A stretch of 64,000 nt of DNA from positions 2,985,234 through 3,049,233 of the forward strand of contig NC_068987.1 in the NCBI RefSeq assembly GCF_001194135.2, given 5' to 3'. Of the stretch, positions 1,944 to 37,800 are shown in pieces; positions within the stretch are counted from its first letter, which is position 1; each line of letters opens with the position of its first letter. Below the pieces are notes generated by a model. It was not told the DNA's origin. It saw only the letters and a program-made list of their open reading frames with translations, and did no database searches. Origin of the DNA: Octopus bimaculoides. Its lineage: Eukaryota. Position numbers and translations under genes: made by a program.

Positions 1944-2092
1944 CCCGAAGCTTCTTCTTCGTCCCATCGAGCTAGTCAGCGTCTCAAAAGATCAGAAGAT
2001 TACAGCTATTGGAAGAAGTGTGCAAAAGAGTATTCTTTAACTTTAGAAACTCAACAAAAGATGTCTGAATTCCCAAAGAAGCAAGCAGAAAT
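1944..2092 (+). CDS. TRPM2: TRPM2-like in-window exon 1 (PEASSS...KQAEI)
   Basis: ttttctcag acceptor, AT|gtaagt donor, phase 2 fits the next exon. Confidence 0.7.
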
Positions 2093-4906
2093 GTAAGTAT
2101 TTCTTCTTCAATTTTATTTTGTTGTCCATGTATCTGGAGATAATGGGAGTGCATACTAAGTGTAAAGATCTCATGAAGTCTACATTAAGAAAGTCACACA
2201 TGTTTGTTGTTTGGTTCTGACTGAGCAGACCATAACAATCAAAGACATTCTGATTTTTAAACTTGTAAAAGAAACCACTTGTTTCTTTGTCTAACCCCCC
2301 AACTCCCTCACCTGTGTATCTAGGGCAGGGCTTCGTTGGGTAATTAGAGTTCGTTCCTAAACTTATGTCAAAGAAATCTTTATTTGATAATCCTTGAAAA
2401 AATTACATCTTGAAGAGGGAAGAAAAATGTCTTTATACAACAAGAGTCAAATATAATAATCATAATAATAATAATAATAATAGAATAGGAAACCAGACAG
2501 TGTTAATTAAGAAAGAAAGCAAACTATGCTGGATCATAGATATAGCATGCTCAGCTGACAACAAGGTATGTGATAAGGAAGAAAGAAAAGTCGAGAGATA
2601 TGACAGGTTAGCTTGGGAAGTTAAGCAGTTGTGGTCGATGAAAAAGGTGGTAGTAGTACCAATAATTATCAGAGTACTAATAACTGTCAGAAAACAGCCC
2701 TGCTTGGAACCGCTCGAATACTCCAGAAGGTGCTCGAAAAATAAGGGGTGTTACCTTAGTTCACTGGTAGGGAACAGCTGACGCCGTAGCACATCTCCAG
2801 CATTAGGAGTTGTACAAAGGCAAATATAATAATAATAATAATGATAATAATGATAATAATAATAATGATAAAATAACGATGTGTTTCCATGTTTTTTTGT
2901 TGTGGTTCAGTGTTAACAATTTAAAAGATGATATGCAACTGCAAAAGAAGAACATTAAACGCCTCAGTGATCGTGTTGTGGAACTAGAGAGGGCGCTACA
3001 GACCAGTAGAATATACTTGGAAGATATTAAACATATGTTGGATAAATCTGGTGAGTTTGTCTTCTGTCTAGCATCTATCAAAACTTCATCACCATTGTCA
3101 TCATCATCATCATCATCATCATAATCACCATCATCATCATCATCATCAACATAGTATCTCACCACAACCAATGTTTACAGCATCACCACCACTGCCACCA
3201 CTTTCACTATCATAACCACCATCATCACCATTATCACTATAATCATCACCAGTATCACCAACACCATTACCATCATCATCATCACCAACATCATTAATAC
3301 CATCACCTGCATCATCATTTCTGCTACAACCATCATTACCACCACCACCACCACCAGCACTATCAACACCACCTTTATCATTGCTCAGGTCTGCTCCCCC
3401 TTCCCACTATATATATATATATATATATCCATTTTTTTCCGTCCTTGTTTTCGTATGCATTCGCTACTTTCTTCTGAGGAATCTAATGCTCTTNNNNNNN
3501 NNNNNNNNNNNNNNNNNNNNNNNNNNNNNNNNNNNNNNNNNNNNNNNNNNNNNNNNNNNNNNNNNNNNNNNNNNNNNNNNNNNNNNNNNNNNNNNNNNNN
3601 NNNNNNNNNNNNNNNNNNNNNNNNNNNNNNNNNNNNNNNNNNNNNNNNNNNNNNNNNNNNNNNNNNNNNNNNNNNNNNNNNNNNNNNNNNNNNNNNNNNN
3701 NNNNNNNNNNNNNNNNNNNNNNNNNNNNNNNNNNNNNNNNNNNNNNNNNNNNNNNNNNNNNNNNNNNNNNNNNNNNNNNNNNATATATATATATATATAT
3801 ATATATATAATGAGTTCAAAGAGATATATTATCCAGACAGCTACCATATTAGCTCTCAGTTAAGTTCCAGTTAACGGCTAACCATAACCACAACGAGGTC
3901 AGTATCTAACGTCTGTGTCTACATTTAGTTGTTAATCACTCTGTGAATTCTTCCCATGGGTAATTCTTCGTTGGACAATAAAAGTTGTCTGGAGTGTATA
4001 ATTAATACTAATAACAATAAGAAAGATAATGGAAACTTGTACATCCACAAAATTCATCTGATGTCATATGTGTCCGTGTTTTATATTCACAGATGTCCAA
4101 GGTGTGTCCAGTACGAAAGGTCAGAGTCTCCATGTTGCCTCACGACAGTCTCCCTACCCTGGAACCAAACTTGCTCGATTCCCAGTCTTTGATAAATATG
4201 TGCCTTGGGAAGTAAGTCCTAGTTGTTGTTGATTTTGGTGTTGTTGTTGTTGTCTCTCTTGTCTGTTGGACAAGGCCATGTTGGAGCATCTCGGAGTGGG
4301 GGCAAGGGGGACCCTGAATTTCTATTTCACTGTCATTATCACCATCACTGTCCTAATCATAAGCCAACAATGGAACTTCTATGAAGTCACTTGCATTTAC
4401 TTGAAATAGCAGTCAAATCACCCTTAAATTCTACACTGCCAATCATAATGGGGTCCTGGATAGCTTGTCGTTGAGAAAAAATCAGGTGGTCACCACTGGA
4501 ATGGCTTTAAATGTGGTTTTGCTGAATCAAGACATGTGAGACAAGCATGAGGTCACCGTTTTGGGAGAGGAGAGGAGGTCAGCTTTTCCCTTCATTGGTC
4601 AGCAGTAATTTGTAGATACAGTCACATAACCACTTCTGCTGGGACCTGGGCTGTTTCTAGAAGCAGTTGCTGAGTCCCAAGTATACCTTTCTTATCAACC
4701 TTTCCATCCCTGGATATTCCATGAAGGAAGGATACATTAATAGATTCACAGAATCTATGGAGCCTCAAAGGATGCTGGTTATTTGTTAAGTAGAACCAGA
4801 CATATCGGCTTTTGGGCCTGTCCCTCCAGATTTTTTGTTGGAGTTTACCTCCTTTGCTTTAATTAAATGCTCAATTAATTATCCTACAAAGCAGCAAGGG
4901 TTTATG

Positions 4907-4971
<65 letters not shown>

Positions 4972-7900
4972 CATCATCATCATTGAGTGAGAGAGCAGGG
5001 CATGCCATCAAAGTGACACTGGGGTAAAATATACGAAGCCCATTATACCCATCATGACTACCCGTCTGATAAGGGGACACCAGGCACATGCATCACAACC
5101 ATATGTGTACGACATGGTGATCTCATATAAAGATAAACAGCACATGACCTTGCAGCTGGGGCCCAGTTAGAATTTTCTTCGGGTAGAGTAGCCCATCCCG
5201 CTCAAAAGGTCCCTGAATAAGGTTTGCTAAAGGATGTTGAGCAAAACACCCATGTTTCCAAAGGTGAATTATTCAAACTCCAAAGAATTCCTCTCAACAC
5301 ATGGCTATGATGCTTCCCCACTACTTCTGCTCATGATCAGAAATTATTATTATTATTATCATTATTATTATTATTANNNNNNNNNNNNNNNNNNNNNNNN
5401 NNNNNNNNNNNNNNNNNNNNNNNNNNNNNNNNNNNNNNNNNNNNNNNNNNNNNNNNNNNNNNNNNNNNNNNNNNNNNNNNNNNNNNNNNNNNNNNNNNNN
5501 NNNNNNNNNNNNNNNNNNNNNNNNNNNNNNNNNNNNNNNNNNNNNNNNNNNNNNNNNNNNNNNNNNNNNNNNNNNNNNNNNNNNNNNNNNNNNNNNNNNN
5601 NNNNNNNNNNNNNNNNNNNNNNNNNNNNNNNNNNNNNNNNNNNNNNNNNNNNNNNNNNNNNNNNNNNNNNNNNNNNNNNNNNNNNNNNNNNNNNNNNNNN
5701 NNNNNNNNNNNNNNNNNNNNNNNNNNNNNNNNNNNNNNNNNNNNNNNNNNNNNNNNNNNNNNNNNNNNNNNNNNNNNNNNNNNNNNNNNNNNNNNNNNNN
5801 NNNNNNNNNNNNNNNNNNNNNNNNNNNNNNNNNNNNNNNNNNNNNNNNNNNNNNNNNNNNNNNNNNNNNNNNNNNNNNNNNNNNNNNNNNNNNNNNTATA
5901 TATATATATATTACATATATAATATACAATATATACTGAATATATCTCTTTTGACAGAGTATATACGATGTGTATGATCCTAAAACATACACCAAACCAA
6001 AAGACCAATTTCTGGAATATGAAATTGTGTTTGTTGATGAAGATATCTTCGAGTAAGTACAGTTTTACTATTGAAAATATTTACTTTGCCCTCTAAACTC
6101 TTCCCAGTCTATTTAATGATTAACCATTTAACATTAACCATTTACCATTAACCATTTACCATTAACCATTTAACATTAGTATTATTCTGTCAAATGTAAT
6201 ACTTATTCATTCTCATTGTTTTGAATTAATCATGGAACGTCTTGTAGCTTAGTTTTCGTATGACATTGTAGGGCAAAGTGTAAGAGGCCAGATCTGGCCA
6301 GTTTGAACGTAAAACAGGTAGAATATCTAAGCCAAATATAACTGGTTTAAACACTAAAAGGTTAAATGTCTGCATATCTGTTTCCTGTCCTCTTGCATGT
6401 CTGTTTATGTCTTCTCTAGTTGTTTTACATAGTTACAGCTAACAGATTAGAGTTGATGGTCACATGATCATCTCATTATCACTGACCATATTCTAACAAA
6501 GATGCATACATTCCAAGATTTACGGCAGTAAAATAGTTGCCACAAAGAGTAGATCAATAGCTTCTGATGTTCTCTTGTGAATAGAATAAAAACTAGGGTT
6601 CCTTGTCAGGAAGGTGTGTGTATTGATCTCACGTTCCTGCCTTTAGGCTTTCACTTCAAACACACCAGCTCAAGTTGATTCGTTCTCAGTCGAAAGACAC
6701 CTGTTGTTATTTCTTGTTGTTTGTATTCATAATTGTGTACCATGTTCTCCATTTTTTTTTTGTCTATTTGTCTTTGTTGCCTACACATTCGTTAGCTTTC
6801 TTACAAAGAGGTCTAATGCTCTTAGCTTAGACTTTTTGGGGGGCAACTAGACCAAACCATCTCAAATGTAATTGCCCAAAATGGTCATGACTTCTGGGAC
6901 TTGACTGATGAAAGAAAGCCAAGAATGACCCGTCTTTTTTGCCTCTCCTTCTAATGGTTGTTTCTCTTGTCTGCCTTTGTGTCGTCTATCTGTCTGAACG
7001 TTTTAATGCCCTCTATTGCGTTTTTGTTCCATTTTTATATTTATATATATTTATATATATCATCGTTTAACGTCCGCTTTCCATGCTAATATATATATAT
7101 ATATATATATAGGGTGCAGTGAATAAATTGTCATCTAAATTATGCAAATGAAAATAATACTAACATTTCATTTTAACAGAGATATATTTACCGAAATTAC
7201 ATAAAAATATCTTGAGATACTAAAGAGTAAATTTATTCAATAAAATAAAGAAGTAGTATTGAACCAGTGCATGTTTGTTTTAATTTTTATTGGCGTAATG
7301 ACCCTCCCTACACAATAAAGTTTATTACTTAATCTTAACAGAAACAAATCAATATAATCTCATTACAAAAAAAATTGATTATTCTTTTATTTTATATATT
7401 TTTCTAATTTATATTTTCATAATTATTATTTCAAAAGCCATCAGGATTTTCTTTCATCTCCTGCCATAATCATCTGCCAAAATTTACCTCTAATTGCAGG
7501 TTACGGGCCCTTGAAGAACTTCGAGCCCAAATGCCAGAAGAAGAAAGAGTTGAACAACCTGCACTCCCTAATTTCCGACCTATGTGGAATGCAGTGGTTA
7601 CATATCGACAAGGAAATGCTACACGAGAGGTAGACCGGAGATCTTGGATTACGATAGATTCTCAGCCTGTCCGATACAAATTAGATCCTTCTGGAGTTCC
7701 ACAGTAAGTGTCGAGGTTTCTCTTTTTGGTTACAGAGAATGGGAGTTTGTTTGGGGTCACTTAACTGGTTGGTGACCCCCAACTGAAATAAATCCAACTG
7801 GATGAAGCGACAAAGTGTTGGCTTACTGATAGGGAAAAACTGTAAATCTGTATTATGTCATTGGCTCAGTTCACACAGCTGTAAACAGGTACCATGACAG

Positions 7901-10900
7901 GCATGGGCCCAGGAACAGGGGATGCAAAGAGTGTGCTTGCACCTGCTAAAATTTTTGTGGAGTGCAAAATCAAAATTTGCACCCTTCTTCTTCTTCTTCT
8001 TCTTCTTCTTATTCTTCTTCTTCTTCTTCTTCTTCTTCTTCTTCTTTACATTTAATGTCTGCTTTCCATGCTGGTATGGGCTGGACGGTTTGACTGAAAA
8101 CTTGTAAGCCAAGGGGTGCACCGGGTAGCCAAGAGCTGCACCAAAGTAAACAAATGAATGACATTGATTTATAGTTTAAACAATTTATTTACGGGACTTG
8201 CATTTGCTGTTGATATGCACAATTCTTCACTCCATTAATTTGTTGCCAACTGTTACGAGTTGAGAGGAATAAAAACAGGGTACCTCTGTGGATGTGATGT
8301 GGTGGTAGAAGTGAATATGTTTTGTGTCTGTGTGTGCGTCGTTCATCTGGGAAAGTAGTAGGCTATCTCGTGTCCTGATTCTTTCTGCCTGCCCCTTTAC
8401 TGACCACGGTATTTATAACAGCCACGGCAGCTAGAAGGACAGACATACTGCAGGAGAGATTGTGTCTAAATAGGTCAGCTCCTGTCCATTTGAACTTCGC
8501 CTGACATGGCTGAGGTCGTTGGTCAAAGGGAGATAATTTATCATTTTTTGTCTGGACAAAGAAAATTTCTTCGTGCCTGTCGGTCTGTGGTGGTTCAGAC
8601 GAGCAAGAATCCTTAGATTCGGTTTCGAATCTAAGCTTAGAGGAAAGAAGTGTTAGTTTTTACAAACAGAAATAAATAAATAAAAAAACATGACCTTATT
8701 TGTAAAAATTATGGGGGCTGGGTTTGCACCCCCAAAGCAAATTTTGTTCCTGAGCCAGTGATGACAGGGTATCAGAGCAGGCATACCAGTGATGACAGGG
8801 TATCAGGACAGGCATAGATGTGTGATGAAGAAGGTCCCTTGACAAACTTATGGTTTTAGCTTCTGCAAAGTACTTTGGACAAGTATCATTTATTGTATTC
8901 TTGTGTTGACTAATGTTTGGTTAATGGAATTGGCAGAGTGAAACTTTGTGGAGAGCTGTCGTGCATGTGTGTGTGTGTGTGTGTGTGAATGTGTGAAGTT
9001 GCATTCTTTTACATGAAAGGGTAACTGTTCGAAAGGCATCATTAAAATAAGTACAATTCTGAAACAATTCTTTCTAACTTTGGTACAATTCCAACAATTT
9101 TATATGGAGAGCTGAGTCTATCACATCAACCTCAGTACTTGACTTGTACTTTATTCTGTCAATCCCTACAGGATGACAGGCAATGTCGACCTGAACAGGA
9201 TTTGAACTCAGAACCAAAAAATGTTTTTGTCAGCATTTTGTCCTGTGCAGAAATGATTCTGCTTGGATCCTCTATCTGTTTCAGTCATTTGACTGCGGCC
9301 ATGCTGGAGCACTGTCTTTAGTCGAAACAAAACGACCCCAGGACTTACTCTTTGTAAGACTTGTACTTATTCTATCAGCCTCTTTTGCCGAATTACTAAG
9401 TTACAGGGACGTAAACACACAAGCAATGGTGAGGGGACAAACACAGAAAGATAAATGGTTGCTGGCAAATTTTTCTGCTCTTAAAAGGATTTTATCCTTT
9501 ATATATATATATATATATATACAGTTCAGTATTTATGTGTTGAATAAAATTTATCTTTCTACTTGTTCTACAATACATTTCAACACTTCAAAAACAAAAT
9601 TATGTTTGTTTACATATGACATAATATATATATCGAAATCGTAATTGAACCATATTCAATGACTGGCACCTGTGCCAGTGGAGCACTAACAGCACCATCC
9701 GAATGTGATCATTGCCAGAGCAGCTGTCTGGCTTCCGTGCCAGTGGCATGTAAAATTGTATCATAAAAAAAAAGAAACATTTACTGAAAAGAACTTTTTC
9801 CATTTCAGAAATCCAATGGGTCGCACGGGTATTCGAGGTAAAGGTTCATTATGGCGCTGGGGTCCCAATCATGTGATTCGAGGTGTTGTGACCAGATGGA
9901 GACGCAAATATACTACAGATTTTCAGCCAACCAACTATCTCTATGTCGATGGGAAACGAGTCTTGGAGTTTATTGCTGTGCGGAAAGAAGATGCAGATGA
10001 ATACCTCTTTTGTTTACCTGGGGTAAGTATTTGAGGCAGGTTCTAACACCCAGAGGTCACTAGATGGGGTTGGTTCTACCAATCTGGGGTTACTAGATGG
10101 GGTTGGTTCTACCAGTCTGGGGTCACTAGATGGGGTTGGTTCTACCAGTCTGAGGTCACTGGATGGGGTTGGTTTTACCAATCTGGGGTCACTAGATGGG
10201 ATTGGTTCTACCAATCTGGGGTCACTAGATGAGGTTGGTTCTACCAGTCTGGGGTCACTGGATGGGGAAGAGGATACAGAAGCGGATACACGTTTATGCA
10301 GAAGCTGATGGAGCAGCAGCCTCCCTAAGCATAAGCAACATTGTTGGTCCTTTATTTTCCTTGAGTGACAAGCCTCCCCTGAAAATTTGTTGCCCCAATA
10401 TTCTCTGACAAAAGAGAGACATTCCTTAAAGAGCCATAGAAAGGGTCAGATAAAGCAGTGTAGTGGGAATGGGTTCAAGAAAGGCTCACTGGAAAGGTCC
10501 ACCAAACAATGGTAATGTAGTAGACCTAATTATTATTAAATTTCACTCAAATATTTTATTTAATTTTTATTTATTAAATGCAGGATGCCCTCCATGGCTT
10601 GACATCCCCTTACAGTACGATGTGTGAAGCATTCATGAAATCTGTATTTGATGAACACGATGTTGATTCTAAAACTGAACTTGACCAAACCGACATGATC
10701 CAGGTACGTGTTATTGTTGTTGTTATTAGTGGAGAATAAAAGGATGAAGGACTCCAACAGACGTGGCAGACTAGAAATAATAGGTTCACAGTTTAATACT
10801 ACCATTTGATTCTTGGCTGTCTTTAGGGTTGCAGGCACCCAAACTTGGTTCCTGCTCACTAGACAACTTCCTCCCACCATTCACAAAGACCTTAAAAGAA

Positions 10901-13405
10901 ATTGGTCATAGCACTTACCTTTCCTCCTCCTCCCCTTACTTCACTCTAACAAACAACCACAATTGCAAATCACGTTGAAATCAAATTTATCTTTCATCTC
11001 TCCATGTTTCGTTGAAATAATTTCTAATTAAATATTGAGATTAACTAAATACAGGGCTTAACGTAATACGTGGGATTAATTAGATACTGGGGTTAATTGA
11101 TTTAATCTCTCATGCTTCTGTTGTGTGACCGTGTATCACCAAAACCTTTGTTATTTATGAAATGTCCTTTAGAGAAAAAGATCAATTAATCTTGAGAAAA
11201 AGATCAATTAATCTTGAGAAAAAGATCAATTAATCTTGAGAAAAAGATCAATTAATCTTGAGAAAAAGATCAATTACTTTAGAATTAAGTTTGTGATTTG
11301 CTTTCAGTTCTTAATTGTAACCAATTCAGTTTGTTTAAACACTTTAGAAAGGCATGAATGCTTCTCAGTCTCCTCCTTCTGGCCAACATAGTTGGTACAT
11401 TATTTACATTATTTACATTTGATGGATATTTGTCCTCATCTTCTTTGTACTGAGGTAGATTCATTTGACTAATAATTCTTCAAGATGATGCCCCAGCATG
11501 GCCGCAGTCTAATGAGTAAAACAAGTGAAAGATAGAAGATAAAAGCCATGGACATATGACAGTTAATCCTTCAGCATTCAGATTTCTCTCTCACATGTAA
11601 TCCTTATTTATTCATTGTTTTGGATTAATCCTGGATTATCTAATAGCTTCAAGATTTTGATGATGTGAATGTTTACTTTGAGAATGACATTGTAAGATAG
11701 GTGTGAGAGGTCAAATCTTACCATATTGAACACAAAACAGGTAAAATATTTGGGTCGAAAACGGCCAGTTTAAACAGTTAATGAGAGCCCTTAGAGTTGT
11801 GAAGGTGTTGGTGGCGCCGGTGAAATTACAAGAAAGTTCCTGTTAAATGTTTTCGTTTTGTTCTTTACAGTTTTATGCCCAGTTTGCGACTTCGACTCAC
11901 TGTCCCCGCAGTTCAGCATCACTGTCCAGTCCATCCCGCTCGACCAGTCAGACAATGCTGCCAATGTTGTCTGGTTCAAGAACAAGTCTTCGCACAGAAC
12001 AAGATAACCAAGGATTCTCAGCCTGTCTGCTCTACAAAGGTTACGTTGATGATCCAAGAAATACAGACAATGCCTGGGTTGAAGCTGAAGTCTGGAATTT
12101 TCATTATGACTTTGCAGATACCTTTGATAGTCGTATACTAGAAGTAAGTAACTCTAATTAACCAATTAACTCTAATCAACTAATTAACTCTAATTAACTA
12201 ATTAACTCCTCAGATAGTTATGTAAAGAATATTCTTTTCTACTCTAGGCACAAGGCCTGAATTTTTTTGGGACCGGGCCAGTCAATTAGATCGACTCCAG
12301 TACGCAACTGGTACTTAATTTATCAACTCCGAAAGGATGAAAGGCAAAGTCGACCTCATCGGAATTTGAACTCAGAATGTAAAGACAGGTGAAATATCGC
12401 TAAGCATTTTGCCCGGCGTGCTAACGTTACTGCCAGCTCACCACCTTTATGTGAAGAATGTTAGACAATCAAGACAACTGATAGGATTTGAACCAGGTAC
12501 CTATCACCTGGCAAGCAAACTTATTATCAATTGCACATTGCACATTAATGAAATAACCCATCCTGCTAGCATTAAGTGACTGACCATCTATGTTGTGAAG
12601 ATAAAACNNNNNNNNNNNNNNNNNNNNNNNNNNNNNNNNNNNNNNNNNNNNNNNNNNNNNNNNNNNNNNNNNNNNNNNNNNNNNNNNNNNNNNNNNNNNN
12701 NNNNNNNNNNNNNNNNNNNNNNNNNNNNNNNNNNNNNNNNNNNNNNNNNNNNNNNNNNNNNNNNNNNNNNNNNNNNNNNNNNNNNNNNNNNNNNNNNNNN
12801 NNNNNNNNNNNNNNNNNNNNNNNNNNNNNNNNNNNNNNNNNNNNNNNNNNNNNNNNNNNNNNNNNNNNNNNNNNNNNNNNNNNNNNNNNNNNNNNNNNNN
12901 NNNNNNNNNNNNNNNNNNNNNNNNNNNNNNNNNNNNNNNNNNNNNNNNNNNNNNNNNNNNNNNNNNNNNNNNNNNNNNNNNNNNNNNNNNNNNNNNNNNN
13001 NCAGCTCCTGTCAAACCATCCGACCCATGCCAGCAGGGGAAACAGATGTTGAGTAGTGATGATGATGATGCGTTCTCTGATGAGATGGAATGGTAAAGCA
13101 CCTGTTGCATAAATCGGTAATGTAGTTCCCTTGCAAGACATAGATTGACAGTCCTCTTCAATGGACGTGTTGTGCCACACAAGTCATTATTCATTAACAT
13201 CTTATATGAAGTCTATTCAGTCCTGGTTTTTTTTTTGTGTTGAGTGAGCTTAATCACATCACTCAACATGAATGTTGATGACTGAACACTTTGAAACAGC
13301 CCCCACTCCCTCCTCCACCTCTTGTATCTTATCTATTTCCATCATTTCAGCTTCATATTGAAACCTTCTGTTGTACAGATTACATGCACACACACAAACA
13401 CACTC

Positions 13406-13439
<34 letters not shown>

Positions 13440-13746
13440 ACATACACACACATCCATCCATCCATCCATTCATTCACACACACATCCATCCATACACACA
13501 CATCTATTCATGCACACACACACACATCCATCAATTCACAAACACACACACATCCATCCATCCACACACACACACACACACACACAGTATATGTGCATTG
13601 TGTTTTACAATAGTATTCTTATTGTTGTTGTACTTTTGCAGGACGCCAGTGTGAAATGGAAAGAAGTGTCCCCTTATGTGAAGTTGGTCGGGAATGAAGC
13701 TGTTATTGTACAGGAAGCTGCCAGGATCCATGATGCTTACAACTGA
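1944..13746 (+). CDS. TRPM2: TRPM2-like cation channel, 3' part (coiled coil + NUDT9-H domain); join(1944..2092,2911..3050,4093..4211,5958..6052,7500..7703,9809..10022,10584..10703,11871..12143,13642..13746)
   Basis: Nine GT-AG exons splice in frame (1419 nt, 472 aa + TGA). NUDT9-family motifs: HVASRQSPYPG..RFPV.D.YVPW, NPMGRTGIRGKGSLWRWGPNH, LYKGYVDDPRNTDNAWVE. An upstream TRPM-type coiled coil (RLSDRVVELERAL..LEDIKHML) argues for a channel rather than stand-alone NUDT9. The 5' part lies outside the window; exact orthology is unproven. Confidence 0.8.
2481..2826 (+). mobile_element. 5'-truncated R4/Dong-like non-LTR retrotransposon 3' end, in a (TAA)n tract
   Basis: RLE-type C-terminus IIDIAC..D..V..KE..KV.RY..L..EVKQLW...VVPII / QKTALLGTARILQKVLEK* (TAA 2742), short 3' UTR, (AAT)n on both sides. 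Confidence 0.8.
2911..3050 (+). CDS. TRPM2: TRPM2-like exon 2, coiled coil
   Basis: ttcag acceptor, G|gtgagt donor; VNNLKDDMQLQKKNIKRLSDRVVELERALQ. Confidence 0.8.
4093..4211 (+). CDS. TRPM2: TRPM2-like exon 3, start of NUDT9-H
   Basis: cacag / gtaagt; HVASRQSPYPGTKLARFPVFDKYVPWE. Confidence 0.9.
4975..5342 (-). mobile_element. Retroposon 3' segment ending in (GAT/AAT)n, embedded between (ATT)n tracts
   Basis: Non-coding, higher GC, bounded by trinucleotide repeats on both sides; family not assignable. Confidence 0.5.
5958..6052 (+). CDS. TRPM2: TRPM2-like exon 4
   Basis: gacag / gtaagt; SIYDVYDPKTYTKPKDQFLEYEIVFVDEDIFE. Confidence 0.85.
6166..6361. mobile_element. piggyBac-type MITE (TTAA flanks); related copy at 11567-11777
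   Basis: TTAA at 6162 and 6362, degenerate CC..TTTA termini; body matches 11567-11777 (gacattgta..gtg.gagagg...aaaacaggta.aatat). Confidence 0.7.
7110..7252 (-). mobile_element. 3' terminus (TIR) of a maT/Tc1-mariner-like element, inserted at a (TA)n tract
   Basis: Reverse complement matches 57145-57250; the TIR gggtgcagtgaataaattgtc resembles the left end at 56407. Confidence 0.75.
7500..7703 (+). CDS. TRPM2: TRPM2-like exon 5
   Basis: tgcag / gtaagt; ...WNAVV...EVDRRSW...YKLDPSGVPQ. Confidence 0.88.
7902..8760. mobile_element. Non-autonomous hAT-superfamily element, 859 bp
   Basis: 16-bp imperfect TIRs (catgggcccaggaaca / tgttcctgagccagtg, 13/16) and a perfect 8-bp TSD ATGACAGG (7894-7901, 8761-8768). 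Confidence 0.8.
9809..10022 (+). CDS. TRPM2: TRPM2-like exon 6
   Basis: ttcag / gtaagt; NPMGRTGIRGKGSLWRWGPNH...EFIAVRK...FCLPG. Confidence 0.92.
10053..10267 (+). repeat. 33-bp minisatellite, about 6.5 copies (GGGGTCACTAGATGGGGTTGGTTCTACCA(A/G)TCT)
   Basis: Direct tandem units at 10053, 10086, 10119, 10152, 10185, 10218, 10251; no spacers. Confidence 0.95.
10584..10703 (+). CDS. TRPM2: TRPM2-like exon 7 (degenerate Nudix box)
   Basis: tgcag / gtacgt; DALHGLTSPYSTMCEAFMKSVFDE...; symmetric phase-0, 120 nt. Confidence 0.8.
11172..11276 (+). repeat. Perfect 22-bp tandem repeat x4.7 (GAGAAAAAGATCAATTAATCTT)
   Basis: Units at 11172, 11194, 11216, 11238, 11260. Confidence 0.95.
11871..12143 (+). 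CDS. TRPM2: TRPM2-like exon 8
   Basis: ttacag / gtaagt; LLYKGYVDDPRNTDNAWVEAEVWNFH. Confidence 0.92.
12235..12440 (-). mobile_element. tRNA-derived SINE family A (other copies about 15990-16200 -, 30718-30930 +, 35027-35225 +, 35530-35684 -, 37470-37625 +, 43590-43790 +, 46020-46195 -, 61120-61335 -, 62045-62260 +, 63260-63475 +)
   Basis: Pol III A/B-box head (ggtgagctggcaga..., gagttcaaattc), shared body gcctttcatcctttcggggtcgataaattaagtaccag. Confidence 0.88.
13642..13746 (+). CDS. TRPM2: TRPM2-like terminal exon
   Basis: tgcag acceptor; DASVKWKEVSPYVKL...IHDAYN*; AATAAA at 13829. Confidence 0.88.
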   Translation, partial: DASVKWKEVSPYVKLVGNEAVIVQEAARIHDAYN

Positions 13747-13834: not shown

Positions 13835-14894
13835 ATTATAACATTTATTTAGTCTTTGTTGTTAATTACACCACCCCCACTTGCCTCTTTAATTACGCCT
13901 CCCTCACCCCTCTTTCATTACATATCTCCCACCCCCTCTTCAATTAAACTTCCCCATATCCCACTTTAATTACACCTCCCTCTTTAATTACCCGTCCCCA
14001 TCTCCCTCCTTAATTACACCCTCTCCCTTTATATCCTGTTTTTTTTTAAATTCTATCTAAATTTCTGAACCATAGAATTGTTGTCATGGTTACAGGTTTC
14101 CAACATCATACTCACTGTTTCCCNNNNNNNNNNNNNNNNNNNNNNNNNNNNNNNNNNNNNNNNNNNNNNNNNNNNNNNNNNNNNNNNNNNNNNNNNNNNN
14201 NNNNNNNNNNNNNNNNNNNNNNNNNNNNNNNNNNNNNNNNNNNNNNNNNNNNNNNNNNNNNNNNNNNNNNNNNNNNNNNNNNNNNNNNNNNNNNNNNNNN
14301 NNNNNNNNNNNNNNNNNNNNNNNNNNNNNNNNNNNNNNNNNNNNNNNNNNNNNNNNNNNNNNNNNNNNNNNNNNNNNNNNNNNNNNNNNNNNNNNNNNNN
14401 NNNNNNNNNNNNNNNNNNNNNNNNNNNNNNNNNNNNNNNNNNNNNNNNNNNNNNNNNNNNNNNNNNNNNNNNNNNNNNNNNNNNNNNNNNNNNNNNNNNN
14501 NNNNNNNNNNNNNNNNNNNNNNNNNNNNNNNNNNNNNNNNNNNNNNNNNNNNNNNNNNNNNNNNNNNNNNNNNNNNNNNNNNNNNNNNNNNNNNNNNNNN
14601 NNNNNNNNNNNNNNNNNNNNNNNNNNNNNNNNNNNNNNNNNNNNNNNNNNNNNNNTTTAAATGATAGAAAATAATAAATAAAAATAATAAAAAATGAAAA
14701 AGATTATATAACTCAATCAATAATAGAAGTAAAAAGAAAAAAGAAACAAATATAAAATAGAACAAAATGTTTTTTTAATAAAGTGTGTAAGGAAAGTCAC
14801 TGAAAAGAGGGGGTCATGTGGGGTCTGAAAAGTGTTTGTGTATGTAGGGGGCATCGGATCTATACAATATATATTCTATTATTGCTTTTTGATT

Positions 14895-15039
14895 TGTTTC
14901 AGTCATTTTACTTCGGCCATGCTGGAGCATTGCCTTTAGTCGAAGAAATCAACCCCAGGTCTTATTCTTTGTAAGCCTAGTACTTATTCTATCAGTTCTC
15001 TTTTTGACGAACCGCTAAGTTACGGGGACGTAAACACAA

Positions 15040-17665: not shown

Positions 17666-19036
17666 ATGAAACTAAAACAACGAACCCTCTTTCTACTTAT
17701 ATGTGTATGTGGTGCAGTAACCTTCATGCTGTTTAGCAAATGGTATCACAGCAAAGCATTAGAAAGTATAGAAGTTAGGAAAAAGATGGTAGACTGCAGG
17801 CTTCTATTTAGAGTAGATCTTGACTATGTCAAAAAGGTTAGCTTAATAAAACAAAATAACAATACAGATACCATTTATCATCTGAAGAAACTTTCAGAAA
17901 ATTGTTCCAATTTCCGTCTGCAACATGGATATTTTAGCAAACTGGTTACTCAAATGGAGCTCGATTACCCAATTGCATTTGCTATCAAAATGTATGACAA
18001 ACCAAAGCAATTTGAAAGATTATTAAGAGCAATCTACTTACCACATAATGTTTATTGTATCCATGTTGATGCGAAGACTGATAACAGTGTATTTGAACTG
18101 ATAAAAAGCATCAGCATGTGTCTACCAAATGTTGTACTTGCAGAGAATCGAATAAATATTGTTTATGCTACATTTAGGCATTTACAAGCTGAACTAGAAT
18201 GCATGAAGGCATGCATCAAATCAAATGTAAAATGGAAATACTACATAAATCTTACTGGCCAAGAATTTCCATTGAAGACAAACCTGGAATTAGTTGAAAT
18301 TCTGAAGATTTTCAATGGAACGAACGATATTGAAGCATACAAGCACCCTAAAACTTTAGATTGGCGTGTAAAAAATAAGATAAAAATCAATGAGAAATCA
18401 CTGAGTATAACAAATGAAAGCAAACTACCATTGAAATATCAAATACAGTTGTATAAAGGAAGTGCCTATGGGATGTTTTCACGAGACTTTGTTGAATTTG
18501 TCTTGGAAGATGATGTTGCAACGACCATTCTTAATTGGATGAATGATACATACTCACCAGAAGAAAATATCTGGTCAACTCTTAATTCCCTAGAATTTGC
18601 CCCAGGTGGCTCTGGTGGCATTGAAATCCGACATGATAAACATCACTTTGCCTCAAAAGCTGTGATATGGGACTGGGATCCGGTTAAATGTTTCGGTAAA
18701 TCAATACGTAGTGTTTGTATTTATGGTATAGGAGATCTTCCATGGCTCAAAAGCCGTCCCCAAATAGTAGCCAATAAATTTGACGAAGATACCGATTCTA
18801 TTGTCTTAGACTGTTTAGAAGAGTTGTTAACAAACAGAATGCTAATCCAAAATGATGATCAGCTCAACTGGCACTATTATCATAATCTTCCACATGTCAT
18901 GCATAATGCAAAACTCAAAGCCAATGAAAAAACAAAAGAATTCCTGCAAAGCAAGAAAAGAAAATGGCTTTTGCAACAAGAACAATTTCTTAAACCTGTG
19001 ACAAAGAGACAGAATATTACAGTAGCAAAACAATGA
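17666..19036 (+). CDS. GCNT: Beta-1,6-N-acetylglucosaminyltransferase (core-2/I-branching, GT14), type II Golgi membrane protein, 456 aa (463 aa with the upstream micro-exon)
   Basis: Uninterrupted ORF; N-terminal hydrophobic anchor; motifs PIAF..ERLLRAIY.P.NVYCIHVD.K, WKYYINLTGQEFPLKTN.ELV, YKGSAY, DTYSPEE (catalytic Glu position), RSVCIYGIGDLPWL, ANKFD. GCNT1/3/4 subtype cannot be assigned by eye. Confidence 0.93.
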   Translation: MKLKQRTLFLLICVCGAVTFMLFSKWYHSKALESIEVRKKMVDCRLLFRVDLDYVKKVSLIKQNNNTDTIYHLKKLSENCSNFRLQHGYFSKLVTQMELDYPIAFAIKMYDKPKQFERLLRAIYLPHNVYCIHVDAKTDNSVFELIKSISMCLPNVVLAENRINIVYATFRHLQAELECMKACIKSNVKWKYYINLTGQEFPLKTNLELVEILKIFNGTNDIEAYKHPKTLDWRVKNKIKINEKSLSITNESKLPLKYQIQLYKGSAYGMFSRDFVEFVLEDDVATTILNWMNDTYSPEENIWSTLNSLEFAPGGSGGIEIRHDKHHFASKAVIWDWDPVKCFGKSIRSVCIYGIGDLPWLKSRPQIVANKFDEDTDSIVLDCLEELLTNRMLIQNDDQLNWHYYHNLPHVMHNAKLKANEKTKEFLQSKKRKWLLQQEQFLKPVTKRQNITVAKQ

Positions 19037-32300: not shown

Positions 32301-34802
32301 TAGGAAGTTGTGAAGTTCATGTCAGCTTCTAAGTGAAGGTTTGTGCCATAGAGGTTGGAGCGAAAGGTTTTGTGGAAAATCTGCTTGTGATCTTCTGAAA
32401 CATCTCTCTTGAAAGAACAAGACCAAAGCCTTAAAGGTAATATCAGAGACATCAGAGAAATGCTCCAGCTGGATCTGGTTGAGGTAGAACAAAGACAAGC
32501 TCAATGCCTGTTGAAGGCAATGTTTTTGTATTTCGGTGCTAAAGGAAATAACTGTGAGGGAGTCGTTGCCATGGCGTCGACGTTTCACTGCTACCATGAC
32601 AACCAGCGTTATTTCTTTGGGAACTGAATCAACAGAGAGGAGTTCCAACTTGATGAAAACCTCCAAACAGTTTAAATACACGGGTCTCCAGTATCCAAGT
32701 AGCCAAAAAGTATCAACAGAAGGGCAGCCAAGAGTCGTGGACTGGACCCCTTAGAATGTAAGAAATTAAGGGGCAAAACACCTGCCCGAGCAGGGGTTCT
32801 TCTCCGAAGACCTTCTGCTGTTCAGCTCTCTTGAGAGTTTCTTACCACAAGTTGGAAATTTCAATCACAAACATTCCTGAGTTATTTCCCTTGTAACTTT
32901 CCACGCGCGTCTTGCCACTCAATTTTTGTGTCTTTCAGAATAGACACGGAGATGTAGCTGTGTAGTTAGGACGATCACTTTACATCCACATGGTCGTTGG
33001 TTCAGTCCCCCTGCGCAGCATATTGGACAGATGTTTTCTACTACAGCCTTTGGCTGACCAATGCCTTGTGAATTCATTTGGTCCACAGAAACTGTGTGGA
33101 AGCCTATCATATGTGTGTGTTTATTTGGGCCCACTATTGCTTGACAACCAGTGTTGGTTTGTTGATGTCTGCGTAACTTAGTGGTTCTGCAAGAGGACAA
33201 TTAACACAAATAACATTACAAGAAATCCTAAAACATCCTTATACATACGATAAAATAACTCCCAGTTATTAAAAAAAGCAAGTGCTGGCATTGATTTGTT
33301 CAAATAAACTCTTTGAGGTAATGCTCCAGCATGGCAACAGCAGTCAAATGATTGAGAAAAAGTTAAATATAATCGATAAAGATATAAAATGCATTTTCCT
33401 GTTGATCACAATGGTGGATTGCTGGATGTCGTTGGTTGAGTCTGATTATTTCTCTCCTGCCAGAAATAATTAATTTAGTGCTAACGCATCAAATTTGAAA
33501 TAATTATGGAGGTATGGGCGTGGTTGAGTGGTTAAGAAGTTTGCTTCCCAACCACATGGTTTTGGGTTCAGTCCCAATGTGGGGCACCTTGGGCAAATGT
33601 CTTCTATTCATAACCCCAGAATGGATTTGGTAAACGAGACGGAAAAAAGCTTGTTCTGTGTGTGTGTATGTGTATATATAACTGTTTAACTTGTTTCAGT
33701 CATTTGACTGTGACCATGCTGGAGCACCGCCTTTAGTTGAGCAAATCGACCCCAGAACTTATTCTTTGTAAGCCTAATACTTATTCTATTGGTCACTGTT
33801 GCTGAACCGCTATGTTACGGGGACGTAAACACACCAGCGTCGGGTGTCAAGTAATGTTGGGGGAACAAACACAGACACACAAATACATACACACACACAT
33901 ATACAACAATCTTCTTTCAGTTTCCACCTACCAAATCCACTCACAACGGTTTGGTCAACCTGAGGCTGTTGTAGAAGACACTTGCCCAAGATGCCATGGG
34001 TGGGACTGAACTCAGAACCCTATGGCTGGGAAGCAAACTTCTTACCACACAGCCACGCCTATGCCTGTGTGTTAATATCTCCTTGTCTTGGCATCATGTA
34101 ATTGTTGTAAATGAGCATCACTGTCATACAGGTTGTGGCCTTCATTTCCAATCTTCCATGAAAATATTTCAAGCCACAGGGAAATATAACCTTACTCAGA
34201 AAGAGTTGAGGGTTGGCAACAGGAATCAGAAGGGCCTGTGGTTATAGAATGAATCTCCATCTGACCCATACAAGCATGGAAAAGTGGACATTAAAATGAT
34301 GATGATGATGATGTGTTAAAGAAAGGACAACATCATTATCTGAATGGCTTAGAGTAGTTTGGTAAGAAAGGGAAACAACTGAGACATGTTTCAGCTGTAT
34401 TAAACCTCATAAGTGAAGTGCTTCTTCTACTGTTCTTGCTAAAGTATAAATCTATTTATTCTAAGTGTTTTAATTTTTCACACCTTCTCTCATATAACAT
34501 TGTTCCTCTCTCGTTAGTGAAGCTCTCATCATTACATTAGCAACTAGAGCGACACCTATGCCTAATTAAAACATGTCCACATCTCTTTCTATATTTGCTG
34601 AAATAATTAAAATAACATCAATCAATAGACTGACATTGTCTTTTCCTCACCACATAATTATTTCCAACTAGAATCGTTACATTAAATATGTTAACACAAA
34701 CTTAACTATTATTATTCCATGCTGATGATGTCTCTGAGTTATTAACAGTGGTTTATTGATATCCAATATGTTAAAAACAAATTCACAAACACAAATTTCC
34801 AG

Positions 34803-34835
<33 letters not shown>

Positions 34836-37800
34836 TGTGAGACACATTACCTTTTACCAAAGCTTCTCTCTTCCAGGTTGTTGGTACCCCGTGTTACCTG
34901 TCTCCCGAACTCTGTTCTGGAATGCCGTATCCTTTGTTTCAAATATCACAAAACATCCCACTTCTGTTGTCGTTCACCAACACACAATTTTGGTGTGTTT
35001 TGCTTTTATAATATTCTTTGTTTTCAAGGCAAAGATCTGCCAGAATCGTTGTCATGCTGGGTAAAATGCTAAGCGTCATTTCGTCTGTTTTTATGTTCTG
35101 AGTTCAAATTCCATCGAGGTCAGCTTTGCTTGTCATCCTTTCAAACTTGATAAAAACAAGTACCTGTAATATACTGAGGTTCAATGTAAGGATTTGCTCC
35201 TTCCACCAAAATTTGAAACCAATATTCTTTCTGTTTTCTACCAGATTAGTTTATCACTAATCTCTATCACATGTCACAGTCAATAAATATTTTTCCCAGA
35301 TTTCTAGCAATGTGCTGTCCTTGAGAAGACCTCCCAAGCCAAGTGAAATCGTAGTCGTGGCTGATGGTAGTGTCATGTAAGTGGTATTTAAAAAGCACAT
35401 TTCAAGTGTCGGACCTCATGGAGGCAAAGCAACTGATGCCGGTGGCACGTGAAAAGCTACTTTTGAATATTGGGCCTCACAGAGGCAATGACCAAGACCT
35501 TTGGCATTATGTCATGCTTGAGAGGCTAAGTCAATTACATGGCCCCAGTATGCAACCGGTACTTATTTTATAGACCCCCCACCCCAAGGATGAAAGACAA
35601 AGTTACCCTTGGCAGAATTTGGACACAGATGCTGCTAAGTGTTTTACCTGACATGCTAACGATTCTGCCAGTTTGCCACCTTAATTACTAATAACAGCTA
35701 GAATTACAAAACGGTTAGGGGGTCATGTTAGGGGTCACGTATTTACTGGACCTAAAATTACTGACCTAGAAACGTGTTTCCTATTCTGTTATTCCTTAAC
35801 CAATTACAAAGATATAACCAAAAAAGTGACATCTGGGCTCTTGGTTGTGTTCTTTATGAAATGGTTACTCTGAAACGAGCCTTCGAAGCATCGGTAAGTA
35901 ACAATTTTTTAGTTAACCTCAACAATTGGCCAACATTTTTATTTCCAGAAAATATCACGGTAGTAAACACCAATTGATTTTCACCTCTTCTCGACTGTCA
36001 TCTCTTGACCTTTCACCTTTCAACCTTCATCTTTTAACCTTCAACTTCTTAATCTTTAATATTCATCTCTTAATCCTCTCCTTTAATCCCAGTTTCTTTC
36101 TACATTGTTTACTTTTACATTTATAACATAATAAACATTATAAATTGGTTAAAAATGGTAATTATTTAGCCCCACAAGCACTTCAGCAGTGGCTGAGGAT
36201 TGAACCAGATACTTCAGTTTGTTATTCAACATCTTGTTTGGATTCACTCACACTGCATCGATCGTCGCACAGAGTACCAAGGGTCACGACCAGGGGTGCC
36301 GGTTCTGGCACCTGCATTCGACAAGTCAACTACAGAACCAAACTCAAAATCGAAATTTGCCAGATGCAAGCATCCTGTTAAAGTATCGACTTTCAATGGA
36401 AGAACTTTTGGGATGTTAAATAATGCTGTTGATGATGAATCCATTATCCAGTGGTATTGGACACTATAATCTCCAGTTTGAGACAAAAAAGAGAGGAAAA
36501 TACACTCCTGATACAATCTGTAGCATCGATAAATTCAGGAACAATTTAAAATGTCTTCTGCTTTACACTGATATTCCTTGACTGGAATGGTTTATTTGTT
36601 GGATAAAATGTTCTCCTTTCAGACAAAGAACATCCCTGAAATGTTAGATTCCTCTCCTCTTCGCAGCATGCAACCTTATTGAAACTCATAAGCTGTCTAT
36701 TTATCTGTCTATCTATTGATCTGCTGTCTATTTATCTGTCTATCTATTGATCTGCTGTCTATGATCTGTCTATCTATGTGTCTATCTGTCTATCTATCTA
36801 TCTATTGATCTGTCTATCTATGTGTGTCTATTTGTCTATCTATCTATTTGCCTCTCTGCCTATTTATCTCTCTATTTTTTTTTCAATTTGCCTATCTATC
36901 TGTCTATCTATCCTCTTATGTACCTCACTATCTGTTTGCTTATTTTATAAGTGTATCTATGTAATTATTTACTGACCAAATTGTCTGCCTGTTTATTTGT
37001 CTCCTTGTCTATCTGTCTATTTATGTCTATTTGTCTCTCTGCCTATTTATCTATCTGTTTATTTATCTGCCTATTCATCAATTTGTCTATCTACCTATTT
37101 ACCATCTCTCCCAGAATCTTCCAGCTTTGATCATCAAAATTGTTGGAGGAACCTTTGAACCAATTCCTGATATTTACAGTGAAGAATCGCGATCACTCAT
37201 TCTAAGCATGCTTCACCGAGATCCTAGCAGACGACCAACCATAAACCAGATTATCACACAACCTCGAATTATTAATCATGTTCTCTATCTTTATACTGAC
37301 TGGGGCAAAATTCCATCAACCAGGTTTGTAAACTTTTTGTTCGTTTTATGGATTGTTAAGTTCTATCATCATCATCATCATCATCATTATTTCATCATCA
37401 TCATCTTCATCATTGTCATCGTCATCATCATCACCAGCAATACTGCAATATTGGTGAACTGGCTTCATCTGTCTTTACATTTTGAGTTCAAATTCCGCTG
37501 AGGTCGACTTTGCCTTTCATCCGTTCGAGCTCGAAAAATTAAGTACCAGCTGTGTACTGGGGCCGATCTAATTGACTGGCTCCTTCCCCAAAAATTTTGG
37601 GCCTTGTGCCTAGAGTAGAAAAGAATATTGGTGAACTGGTATTTAGGTTGTACTAGCAGGGAGTTCTAGGGGACAGCATGCATGACCCACACCCAGCTTA
37701 GTGAGATTGAGGCAGCTGATGTTTTGTTTTTGAATTCCTGTCAATCAGATGTCTTCAGGTCCAATGTGAAAAATAAGGTGCTAAGGTTTCCCGAGGGATG

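Follow-up and report, generated by a model that had tools for sequence, protein, structure and literature searches.

TRPS (TRP soromelastatin, ced-11-like) channels form the sister family of TRPM, and molluscs carry two TRPS paralogues. Enzymes of related architecture are the TRPM-beta chanzymes (Nematostella nvTRPM2 and Salpingoeca srTRPM2), whose ADPRase activity has been proven and which have a canonical Nudix box, AEFGEE or REFMEE, and a catalytic-base Asp (D1460 in srTRPM2). NUDT9 is a stand-alone mitochondrial ADP-ribose pyrophosphatase of ~350 aa with the box REFGEE, and vertebrate TRPM2 keeps on its channel a catalytically dead NUDT9-H that binds ADPR and serves in gating. In vertebrate TRPM2 this domain docks on MHR1/2, and in srTRPM2 it stands free. 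The TRPS family was defined with SLOG and Nudix domains (Himmel 2020, PMC7306681). In every species surveyed, O. bimaculoides and O. vulgaris among them, its NUDT9H was found to lack the residues for hydrolysis, a loss placed in an early metazoan TRPS ancestor (Morini 2026, PMC13143021). The catalytic loss in TRPS is therefore already known, having been published in 2026 for O. bimaculoides at the species level, and XP_052825070 was listed there as the O. bimaculoides TRPS (Morini 2026, PMC13143021).

The window analyzed here is a stretch of 64,000 nucleotides of an Octopus bimaculoides chromosome (CM046607.1:2985234-3049233 of GCA_001194135.2). The annotated gene, which ends exactly at window position 13746, encodes a 1704-aa product with the Pfam domains LSDAT_euk, TRPM2 and NUDT9_N, in agreement with a first-pass annotation that had recognized the NUDT9-H of a TRPM-type channel from the letters alone. 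Nine exons at 1944-13746 (+) make up the 3' end of this gene and encode the rib-helix segment, the coiled coil, and a complete NUDT9-homology domain; all are GT-AG, stop-free, and consistent in phase. The channel body and the exons before E1 lie upstream of the window, as do the regions that would show a TRPS-type TRP box 2/TRP segment or a TRPM-specific Cys-rich domain, and the octopus channel is known here from its annotated Pfam content. A C-terminal NUDT9H following a coiled coil, in a product with LSDAT/MHR and TRPM-type channel Pfam domains, is the arrangement of the TRPS proteins, the family of C. elegans CED-11. Judged from the sequence features described below, exon E7 very probably encodes the vestigial Nudix box of a NUDT9-homology domain at the C-terminus of an O. 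bimaculoides TRPS channel.

All nine exons are on the plus strand (+). E1 (1944..2092), the first exon in the window, encodes the post-TRP segment PEASSSSHRASQRLKRSEDYSYWKKCAKEYSL...KKQAE; it is flanked by AG/GT, its phase fits E2, and it was located by tblastn to residues 603-640 of the Tegillarca TRPS, right after the S6/TRP helix. E2 (2911..3050) encodes the C-terminal coiled coil (pole helix) VNNLKDDMQLQKKNIKRLSDRVVELERALQTSRIYLEDIKHMLDKS and was assigned by splice sites, phase, and alignment to the coiled-coil segment of the homologues P0001, P0130, and P0014. The NUDT9-H begins with its cap region in E3 (4093..4211, ...SLHVASRQSPYPGTKLARFPVFDKYVPWE), which was also matched by canonical NUDT9 and TRPM-beta queries. 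A second homologue search, in which the coiled coil and cap region served as the query, returned short fragments only. The domain continues through E4 (5958..6052, SIYDVYDPKTYTKPKDQFLEYEIVFVDEDIF) and E5 (7500..7703, LRALEELRAQ...WNAVVTYRQGNATREVDRRSWITIDSQPVRYKLDPSGVP) into E6 (9809..10022, NPMGRTGIRGKGSLWRWGPNH...LEFIAVRKEDADEYLFCLPG), which carries the conserved GRTG/GxG/WGPNH loop and the first core strands, includes GRTGIRGKGSLWRWGPNH at 9819-9872, and ends in ...FCLPG at 10022, directly before E7. The degenerate Nudix box and helix, DALHGLTSPYSTMCEAFMKSVFDEHDVDSKTELDQTDMIQ, are encoded by E7 (10584..10703), which has an AG acceptor, a GTACGT donor and phase 0 at both ends, and which contains the TRPS-type replacement motif G..S.YS..C..F ... 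DMIQ. E8 (11871..12143) encodes a FYAQFA helix, then a ~40-aa Ser/Thr/Pro-rich insert, then a 25-residue segment; the insert holds a conserved SRTSLRT (11976-11996) and was predicted to be disordered in the orthologue model, and an intact 14-residue motif was found at 12036-12077. The last exon, E9 (13642..13746), encodes DASVKWKEVSPYVKLVGNEAVIVQEAARIHDAYN followed by TGA, with the AGDDA and LYASH motifs eroded: 'ILE|DA' spans the E8/E9 junction and 'LVGNE' lies at 13684-13698.

With many N gaps in the assembly, one of them at 12608-13001 within the gene, E7 might be taken for a decaying remnant (a pseudo-exon or part of a pseudogene), or for an error of assembly or annotation that conceals the true box exon. 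This explanation is hardly credible on the evidence at the locus. Each of the nine exons has an open frame, fits its neighbors in phase and is bounded by GT-AG, and the order E6-E7-E8 is the same in orthologous transcripts and proteins. E7 by itself was 66% identical to the Tegillarca orthologue (9e-12), a degree of conservation like that of its neighbors (53-74% for the other NUDT9-H exons from E3 to E9, with E4 unmatched). The first-pass annotation had raised an intact box exon concealed in an N gap as a possibility to be checked; between E6 and E8 (10023-11870) there were no N runs, and no canonical box-like coding segment was present in those introns. The only gap in the region comes after the box, in an intron whose flanking exons join with a three-residue gap relative to NUDT9.

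The exon, the EAFMKS replacement, and the sorting of motifs into intact and eroded ones, all reported in the first-pass annotation, were seen again in the translation of 10584-10703 and its neighbors. GRTG..GKG..RWGPNH and the 14-residue motif are kept, AGDDA has become E-DA, and LYASH is eroded. That annotation had also stated that all Nudix glutamates are gone, and this statement depends on the register. It holds in the gap-free register (REFGEE to EAFMKS), the one given by a canonical-NUDT9 HMM for almost all clade members. For the octopus sequence alone, HMMER favored a shifted register (REFGEE to SVFDEH) in which one Glu survives; with the shift, the box becomes KSVFDE or SVFDEH, and one or two acidic residues are left. 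The loss of the catalytic signature, as originally claimed, was upheld in both cases: whichever register is taken, A, S or V stands in place of the Glu of 'RE' that coordinates Mg, and a Pfam scan of the spliced octopus protein gave no match to NUDIX (PF00293). NUDT9_N was not matched in that scan either, which is of little information. The metal-binding box glutamates and the AGDDA catalytic-base loop are replaced by a different motif, itself conserved, and in view of the inactive box mutants cited below we infer that the domain cannot hydrolyze ADP-ribose.

The surviving acidic residues leave room for a different proposal, namely weak hydrolysis of ADP-ribose or another Nudix substrate in a shifted geometry, with the acidic pair D-E in 'KSVFDE' and the 'LEDA' Asp at work. 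The octopus-only HMMER register with its one box Glu is in line with such an activity, as is an Asp that may align with the catalytic-base position in the molluscan subgroup. However, the acidic positions vary among orthologues (KDVLME, TYVLEQ, ENIFQE, AKVFGQ), and the predicted position of the helix backs the gap-free register, with zero box glutamates. The Mg-binding Glu, absent in all registers, has been mutated in known enzymes: double mutants without it were inactive, both in NUDT9 (RILGEE) and in nvTRPM2 (AILGEE), and ADPRase activity was likewise abolished in the box mutants REFGKK and AEFGKK (Iordanov 2019, PMC6461439). Residual hydrolase activity of the domain thus seems unlikely on sequence grounds, and the specific route through 'KSVFDE' and 'LEDA' is given very little credence.

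The closest relatives of the octopus domain were a Pecten protein named 'TRPM-like 2' and a Logan transcript, with 56% identity. A profile built from database orthologues recovered proteins of 1350-1690 aa with the same C-terminus, among them full-length relatives from Saccostrea, Strigamia, Tachypleus, Oppia, and, as 'protein ced-11-like', Parasteatoda and Dinothrombium. In the Tegillarca orthologue, S1-S6 and the TRP helix are contiguous with the same C-terminus. Pfam NUDIX (PF00293) was detected in 0 of the 19 best matches and NUDT9_N in 16 of them, whereas most canonical NUDT9 matches ranking after those 19 do carry PF00293. The replacement motif, in the form G..S.YS..C..F...DMIQFF.QFA, was also present in scallop, ark clam, oyster, gastropods, rotifers, and amphioxus, and divergent forms were found in spiders, mites, horseshoe crab, and centipede, including some proteins named "ced-11-like". 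The loss of AGDDA/LYASH is common to the clade together with the replacement motif.

A neighbor-joining tree of 91 sequences over 189 columns, with 100 bootstraps, was confined to the NUDT9-H domain. The octopus domain fell into a group of 34 sequences with 87% bootstrap support, together with the 'ced-11-like' proteins of Parasteatoda and Dinothrombium and the proteins of Strigamia, Tachypleus, and Saccostrea; octopus, Pecten, Tegillarca, and P0001 grouped at 99%, and amphioxus joined the clade at 57% support only. All canonical NUDT9, TRPM-type, and vertebrate TRPM2 sequences lay outside the 34-sequence group, and the full-length TRPM-type proteins P0166, P0208, and P0183, with a canonical or near-canonical box, grouped with NUDT9 enzymes and not with octopus. 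This domain tree, the motifs in common, and the Pfam domains annotated in the product are the basis of the assignment to TRPS. The taxa in the cluster (molluscs, chelicerates, a myriapod, and amphioxus) match those of TRPS, the absence of ADPR-hydrolysis residues is as described for the family (Morini 2026, PMC13143021), and no departure from the family was found in the octopus gene. Within TRPS, the molluscan subgroup shows the Ser/Thr-rich disordered insert with SRTSLRT and keeps DDPRNTDN, which is lost in the chelicerate members.

These results bear directly on the original reading, which had described a paralogue of an invertebrate TRPM2 chanzyme (TRPM-beta) that lost catalysis recently and in cephalopods only, and which, if true, would have represented a new independent chanzyme-to-sensor transition in cephalopods. 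The names of the relatives in the style of NCBI, 'TRPM member-like 2', point that way, as do NUDT9 and TRPM2 as the best solved-structure matches, and the octopus protein does resemble the TRPM-beta chanzymes in its C-terminal order of rib helix, coiled coil and NUDT9-H, in its fold, and in the common GRTG..WGPNH and 10-residue motifs. It differs from them in the box EAFMKS and the eroded AGDDA loop, and the tree sets it outside the TRPM-beta clade, with the ced-11-like proteins. The same degenerate box in bivalves, gastropods, rotifers, and amphioxus, with divergent forms in chelicerates and a centipede, contradicts a loss at the level of cephalopods, and 'octopus TRPM-like2' sequences have been placed in TRPS, with three other O. 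bimaculoides genes listed as TRPM-beta with catalytic residues conserved (Morini 2026, PMC13143021). The claim of a new dead paralogue gave way in the same manner, the domain being found in an old, already described clade, the outcome that the first-pass annotation had itself named as contrary evidence. We consider the TRPM-beta reading highly improbable. Because the motif is shared across phyla and the residues were found to be absent throughout TRPS (Morini 2026, PMC13143021), the catalytic loss is ancient and family-wide rather than cephalopod-specific, and would date to the TRPS ancestor.

Two other parts of the original reading stood: the replacement sequence is unlike the vertebrate RILRQE, and the loss is independent of that in vertebrate TRPM2, which belongs to another family. 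Of 11 hsTRPM2 ADPR-pocket residues, five have been kept in the octopus domain (the equivalents of H1346, G1389, D1431, R1433, and L1484) and six differ. Vertebrate TRPM2, with its dead domain retained on the channel, offers the best functional analogy for a non-catalytic sensor or gating role.

The spliced octopus domain had its best single match among PDB sequences in NUDT9 (1q33, 2.6e-30) and also matched Nematostella TRPM2 (6co7, 6.4e-29). The fold was assessed on an AlphaFold (AF2) model of the 56%-identical Pecten (scallop) orthologue, not of the octopus protein itself. This model had a pTM of 0.79 and showed a helix at the box position (PYSMQCQAFMKD, pLDDT ~93), in agreement with the gap-free register. 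Foldseek searches with the Pecten model gave srTRPM2 structures as the best matches (from 8sr9, 1e-14) and NUDT9 1qvj at 5e-13. The model thus suggests that the Nudix fold (alpha/beta/alpha with a Nudix helix) is retained in the orthologue, with the two-subdomain organization of NUDT9.

The many database entries of 300-470 aa (e.g., Pecten 'isoform X2' of 309 aa, Saccostrea of 438 aa, Branchiostoma of 389-468 aa, and Bulinus of 407 aa) suggest that the module might also be made as a stand-alone soluble protein. Wherever the context could be read, however, the short entries were fragments of channel genes. A Pecten gene model of 1106 aa with LSDAT and TRPM2 lies directly upstream on the same strand, LSDAT_euk and TRPM2 ORFs lie immediately upstream in a rotifer-like contig, and the octopus annotation is one product of 1704 aa, of which the domain is the C-terminal part, spliced behind a coiled coil and with no PF00293 match. 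A stand-alone module was rejected on the genomic context in Pecten, the rotifer-like contig, and the octopus record, and we regard it as quite improbable.

Taken as the C-terminus of a TRPS channel, the domain is most likely a module that folds but does not catalyze, and that has a regulatory or putative ligand-binding function. Such a pseudo-enzyme would have been kept to regulate the channel, and might do so by taking up a nucleotide-like ligand or through contacts with the melastatin-homology (MHR) domains in the cytosol. It has retained the GRTG..GxG..WGPNH loop, the 10-residue motif, and five of 11 ADPR-pocket residues. Between octopus and bivalves the replacement motif is nearly constant, which would fit a new surface for a ligand or partner on what was once the Nudix helix; the idea that the NUDT9-H of TRPS has been re-purposed as a sensor, and is not merely a dead enzyme, is speculative and, in our view, unlikely. 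A phospho-regulatory switch of gating could reside in the disordered, Ser/Thr-rich insert that is specific to molluscs and holds the invariant SRTSLRT. Neither the sensor surface nor the SRTSLRT switch was found proposed or tested in the TRPS and NUDT9-H literature cited here. To our knowledge, no ligand of TRPS channels has been described, and attempts to de-orphanize them could reasonably start from the conserved pseudo-Nudix helix and the partly kept ADPR pocket. What this locus still offers is of modest value: a gene model of the C-terminus verified exon by exon, and the exact replacement motif with its degree of conservation. The names 'TRPM2' and 'TRPM-like 2' given by NCBI in invertebrates mix TRPM-beta with TRPS.

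The gene model was obtained by translating open stretches of the window and mapping database relatives onto it by alignment, and it comprised nine exons on the + strand: E1 (1944-2092), E2 (2911-3050), E3 (4093-4211), E4 (5958-6052), E5 (7500-7703), E6 (9809-10022), E7 (10584-10703), E8 (11871-12143) and E9 (13642-13746, with the TGA stop at 13744-13746). All junctions were of the AG...GT type with consistent phases throughout, and the spliced product of 472 aa was open up to the stop. E7, the exon with the degenerate Nudix box, translated to DALHGLTSPYSTMCEAFMKSVFDEHDVDSKTELDQTDMIQ, exactly as read in the first-pass annotation; the preceding exon ended in ...EYLFCLPG at 10022, and E7 was bordered by an AG acceptor behind a pyrimidine/AT-rich tract and by the donor GTACGT. 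The other motifs quoted in that annotation (an 18-residue and a 14-residue stretch, ILE|DA and LVGNE) were all found in place. The product starts with a post-TRP segment (DYSYWKKCAKEY) and a coiled coil, followed by the NUDT9 cap region (ARQSPYPGT..RFPVFDKYVPWE), the core that includes the degenerate box, an insert rich in Ser and Thr, a strand carrying a conserved 10-residue motif, and a C-terminal helix. The order is that of a TRPM2-type C-terminus, not of a stand-alone NUDT9.

The window corresponds to CM046607.1:2985234-3049233 in GCA_001194135.2, a chromosome-level assembly of Octopus bimaculoides, where it was placed by exact look-up of an intronless neighbour gene (17666-19036), and the 21,371 bases compared with that record (window 7666-29036) were identical, N runs included. 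In the annotation of this assembly, the gene directly upstream of the neighbour ends exactly at the E9 stop and encodes a 1704-aa product with Pfam LSDAT_euk, TRPM2 and NUDT9_N domains; therefore, E1-E9 belong to a full-length melastatin-type channel, the body of which lies upstream of window position 1.

The spliced domain matched NUDT9 (1q33) at 2.6e-30 and Nematostella TRPM2 (6co7) at 6.4e-29, and Pfam scans of the spliced octopus protein yielded no NUDIX match. Queries of canonical NUDT9 and of TRPM-beta, the invertebrate TRPM2 chanzymes, aligned to E3, E6 and E8, with a single query reaching E9 (E = 2), but none aligned to E7. Three registers are possible for the box. The canonical-NUDT9 HMM gave a gap-free register for nearly all clade members, in which the residues opposite REFGEE were EAFMKS in octopus, QAFMKD in scallop, RTFMEL in rotifers and RKFLEN in oyster. 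A confident helix covered PYSMQCQAFMKD in the scallop orthologue's AlphaFold model (pTM 0.79); in this register that segment lies opposite 12 Nudix-box residues of NUDT9, the expected place of the Nudix helix. The first-pass claim that all box glutamates are gone held in the gap-free register but not in that given by HMMER with the octopus sequence alone, which was moved by a few residues (SVFDEH) and retained one Glu; the acidic positions of the shifted register varied freely across orthologues. The Glu of 'RE', which binds catalytic Mg2+, was absent from the octopus box in all registers. The AGDDA loop, the counterpart of the loop with the catalytic base D1460 in srTRPM2 (PMC11479946), was shrunk to E-DA, and LYASH was replaced by LVGNE. 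Since double mutants replacing the 'RE' Glu, RILGEE in NUDT9 and AILGEE in nvTRPM2, were without ADPRase activity (PMC6461439; PMC11479946), we infer from these mutants and the lost residues that the octopus domain is not an ADPRase, and the earlier proposal of a dead box is sound.

An exon hidden in an N gap could have supplied an intact box. Neither N runs between E6 and E8 nor a canonical box-like + strand ORF in the E6-E7 and E7-E8 introns were found, and orthologous proteins had the same E6-E7-E8 exon order as octopus. An N gap at 12608-13001 lies inside the E8-E9 intron; the E8/E9 junction aligned to NUDT9 with a three-residue gap only.

The best database relatives were a Logan transcript (P0001) and Pecten maximus 'TRPM-like 2' (P0002), each 56% identical and with the octopus-type replacement motif, which was further found in Saccostrea, Lottia, Plakobranchus, Dreissena, Branchiostoma and rotifer sequences. 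Pfam NUDIX was detected in none of the closest relatives, whereas most lower-ranked canonical NUDT9 matches had it. When 1.84 billion representatives were searched with a profile built from these sequences, the module turned up as the C-terminus of 1350-1690-aa proteins, including Saccostrea TRPM-like 2, Strigamia T1IZ08, TRPM-like proteins of Trichonephila, Tachypleus and Oppia, and proteins of Parasteatoda and Dinothrombium named 'protein ced-11-like'. In Tegillarca granosa KAJ8317915, S1-S6 and the TRP helix run directly into an octopus-type C-terminus (box DALHGLTTPYSTLCESFMRSV, versus DALHGLTSPYSTMCEAFMKSV in octopus). In a neighbour-joining tree of the NUDT9-H domain (91 sequences, 189 columns, 100 bootstraps), octopus, Pecten, Tegillarca and P0001 grouped at 99%, and the whole ced-11-like group at 87%, which took in no canonical NUDT9, TRPM-type or vertebrate TRPM2 sequence; the group enlarged by amphioxus sequences had 57%. 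Other signatures of the clade in the alignment were WGPNH followed by non-acidic residues (not AADP), EAE.WNFHY (not ETVAVNFHD) and DMIQFF.QFA.

TRPS (TRP soromelastatin) was defined as a ced-11-like sister family of TRPM with SLOG and Nudix domains, present in molluscs (two paralogues), chelicerates, myriapods and nematodes, among others, and Octopus vulgaris was one bait in the collection (Himmel et al. 2020, PMC7306681). Names such as 'octopus TRPM-like2' at NCBI were moved to TRPS by Morini et al. (2026, PMC13143021), who listed XP_052825070 (O. bimaculoides) and XP_029638531.1 (O. vulgaris) as TRPS. They reported that TRPS NUDT9H is devoid of the hydrolysis residues in every species they examined (O. 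vulgaris, O. bimaculoides, C. gigas, P. maximus, Pomacea, Aplysia, C. elegans and Branchiostoma), and placed the loss in an early metazoan TRPS ancestor. The locus may be XP_052825070 or a second octopus TRPS paralogue, and the family-level statement applies to either. The domain thus falls in an old, already described clade, and the dead box is a known TRPS property previously reported for O. bimaculoides. A loss specific to cephalopods in a TRPM2 paralogue, as first proposed, is refuted by that publication, by the ced-11-like grouping and by the motif in other molluscs, rotifers and amphioxus.

The fold was retained in the scallop model, with srTRPM2 structures (from 8sr9, 1e-14) and NUDT9 1qvj (5e-13) as best Foldseek matches. 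Conservation of E7 between octopus and clam (66% identity) equalled that of the other matching NUDT9-H exons of E3-E9 (53-74%), and the replaced helix is therefore under purifying selection. The ADPR pocket of hsTRPM2 consists of 11 residues (Yu et al. 2017, PMC5299621); the octopus domain retained the equivalents of H1346, G1389, D1431, R1433 and L1484, whereas T1347, Y1349, L1379, S1391, E1409 and H1488 differed, the alignment within the box being uncertain. Chelicerate TRPS lacked the R1433 equivalent. The octopus NUDT9-H would probably be a non-catalytic regulatory module and, by analogy with that of vertebrate TRPM2, may bind a nucleotide-like ligand or be a structural piece of the cytosolic assembly.

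Between the dead box and the conserved 14-residue motif stands a Ser/Thr/Pro-rich insert, disordered in the orthologue model and variable except for SRTSLRT (11976-11996, +, E8). This was kept in Pecten (SSRTSLRT), Tegillarca (SSRTSLRG) and a Logan sequence (P0009), with SSRTSVRT in P0112, and it resembles a phosphorylation site for basophilic kinases.

A Logan contig (SRR30952579, 5182-11179; rotifer-like sequences P0004/P0007/P0008, also Rotaria P0014) carried a compact gene in which LSDAT_euk and TRPM2 ORFs precede a dead NUDT9-H of the TRPS type. The data suggest that TRPS is present in rotifers; Himmel et al. (2020, PMC7306681) did not sample rotifers and reported no spiralian TRPS outside molluscs. 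In Pecten maximus LR736843.1, an identical 309-aa NUDT9-H product was encoded at two loci ~31 kb apart, one directly behind a 1106-aa LSDAT and TRPM2 gene model. This points to recent tandem duplication of scallop TRPS and to splitting of its gene model.

Downstream of the octopus gene, between two multi-exon genes, the intronless 456-aa ORF at 17666-19036 (+), annotated as a gene in GCA_001194135.2, contained a full Pfam Branch domain (PF02485, 2.9e-42), that of core-2/I-branching beta-1,6-GlcNAc transferases, and may be a retrogene-type single-exon glycosyltransferase. The next gene (~23077-64000, +) had a protein-kinase C-lobe exon and RCC1-repeat exons, seen at ~37160-37270 and ~49080-49230; its annotated 678-aa product, with Pkinase and RCC1 repeats, resembles NEK8/NEK9 in architecture.

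The E6-E7 intron contained a 33-bp minisatellite (10055-10267; 6.5 copies, 91% match, also with a 99-bp higher-order period) that begins just past the E6 donor and produces long spurious ORFs in two reading frames. The E7-E8 intron contained a perfect 22-bp x 4.8 tandem repeat (11172-11276), and an impure (CA)n/CATC-type microsatellite of ~200 bp (13387-13586) ended ~55 bp before the E9 acceptor. Across the whole window there were 16 N runs with a total of 4635 bases, and AT- or CA-rich simple repeats flank several of them. Four + strand copies of an interspersed, ~150-bp SINE-like repeat (462-605, 9277-9420, 14892-15038 and 33692-33838) showed 82-86% identity with the 9277-9420 copy as reference; three were in or beside introns of the TRPS gene, and short fragments were present on the - strand at 11489-11523 and 49888-49920.
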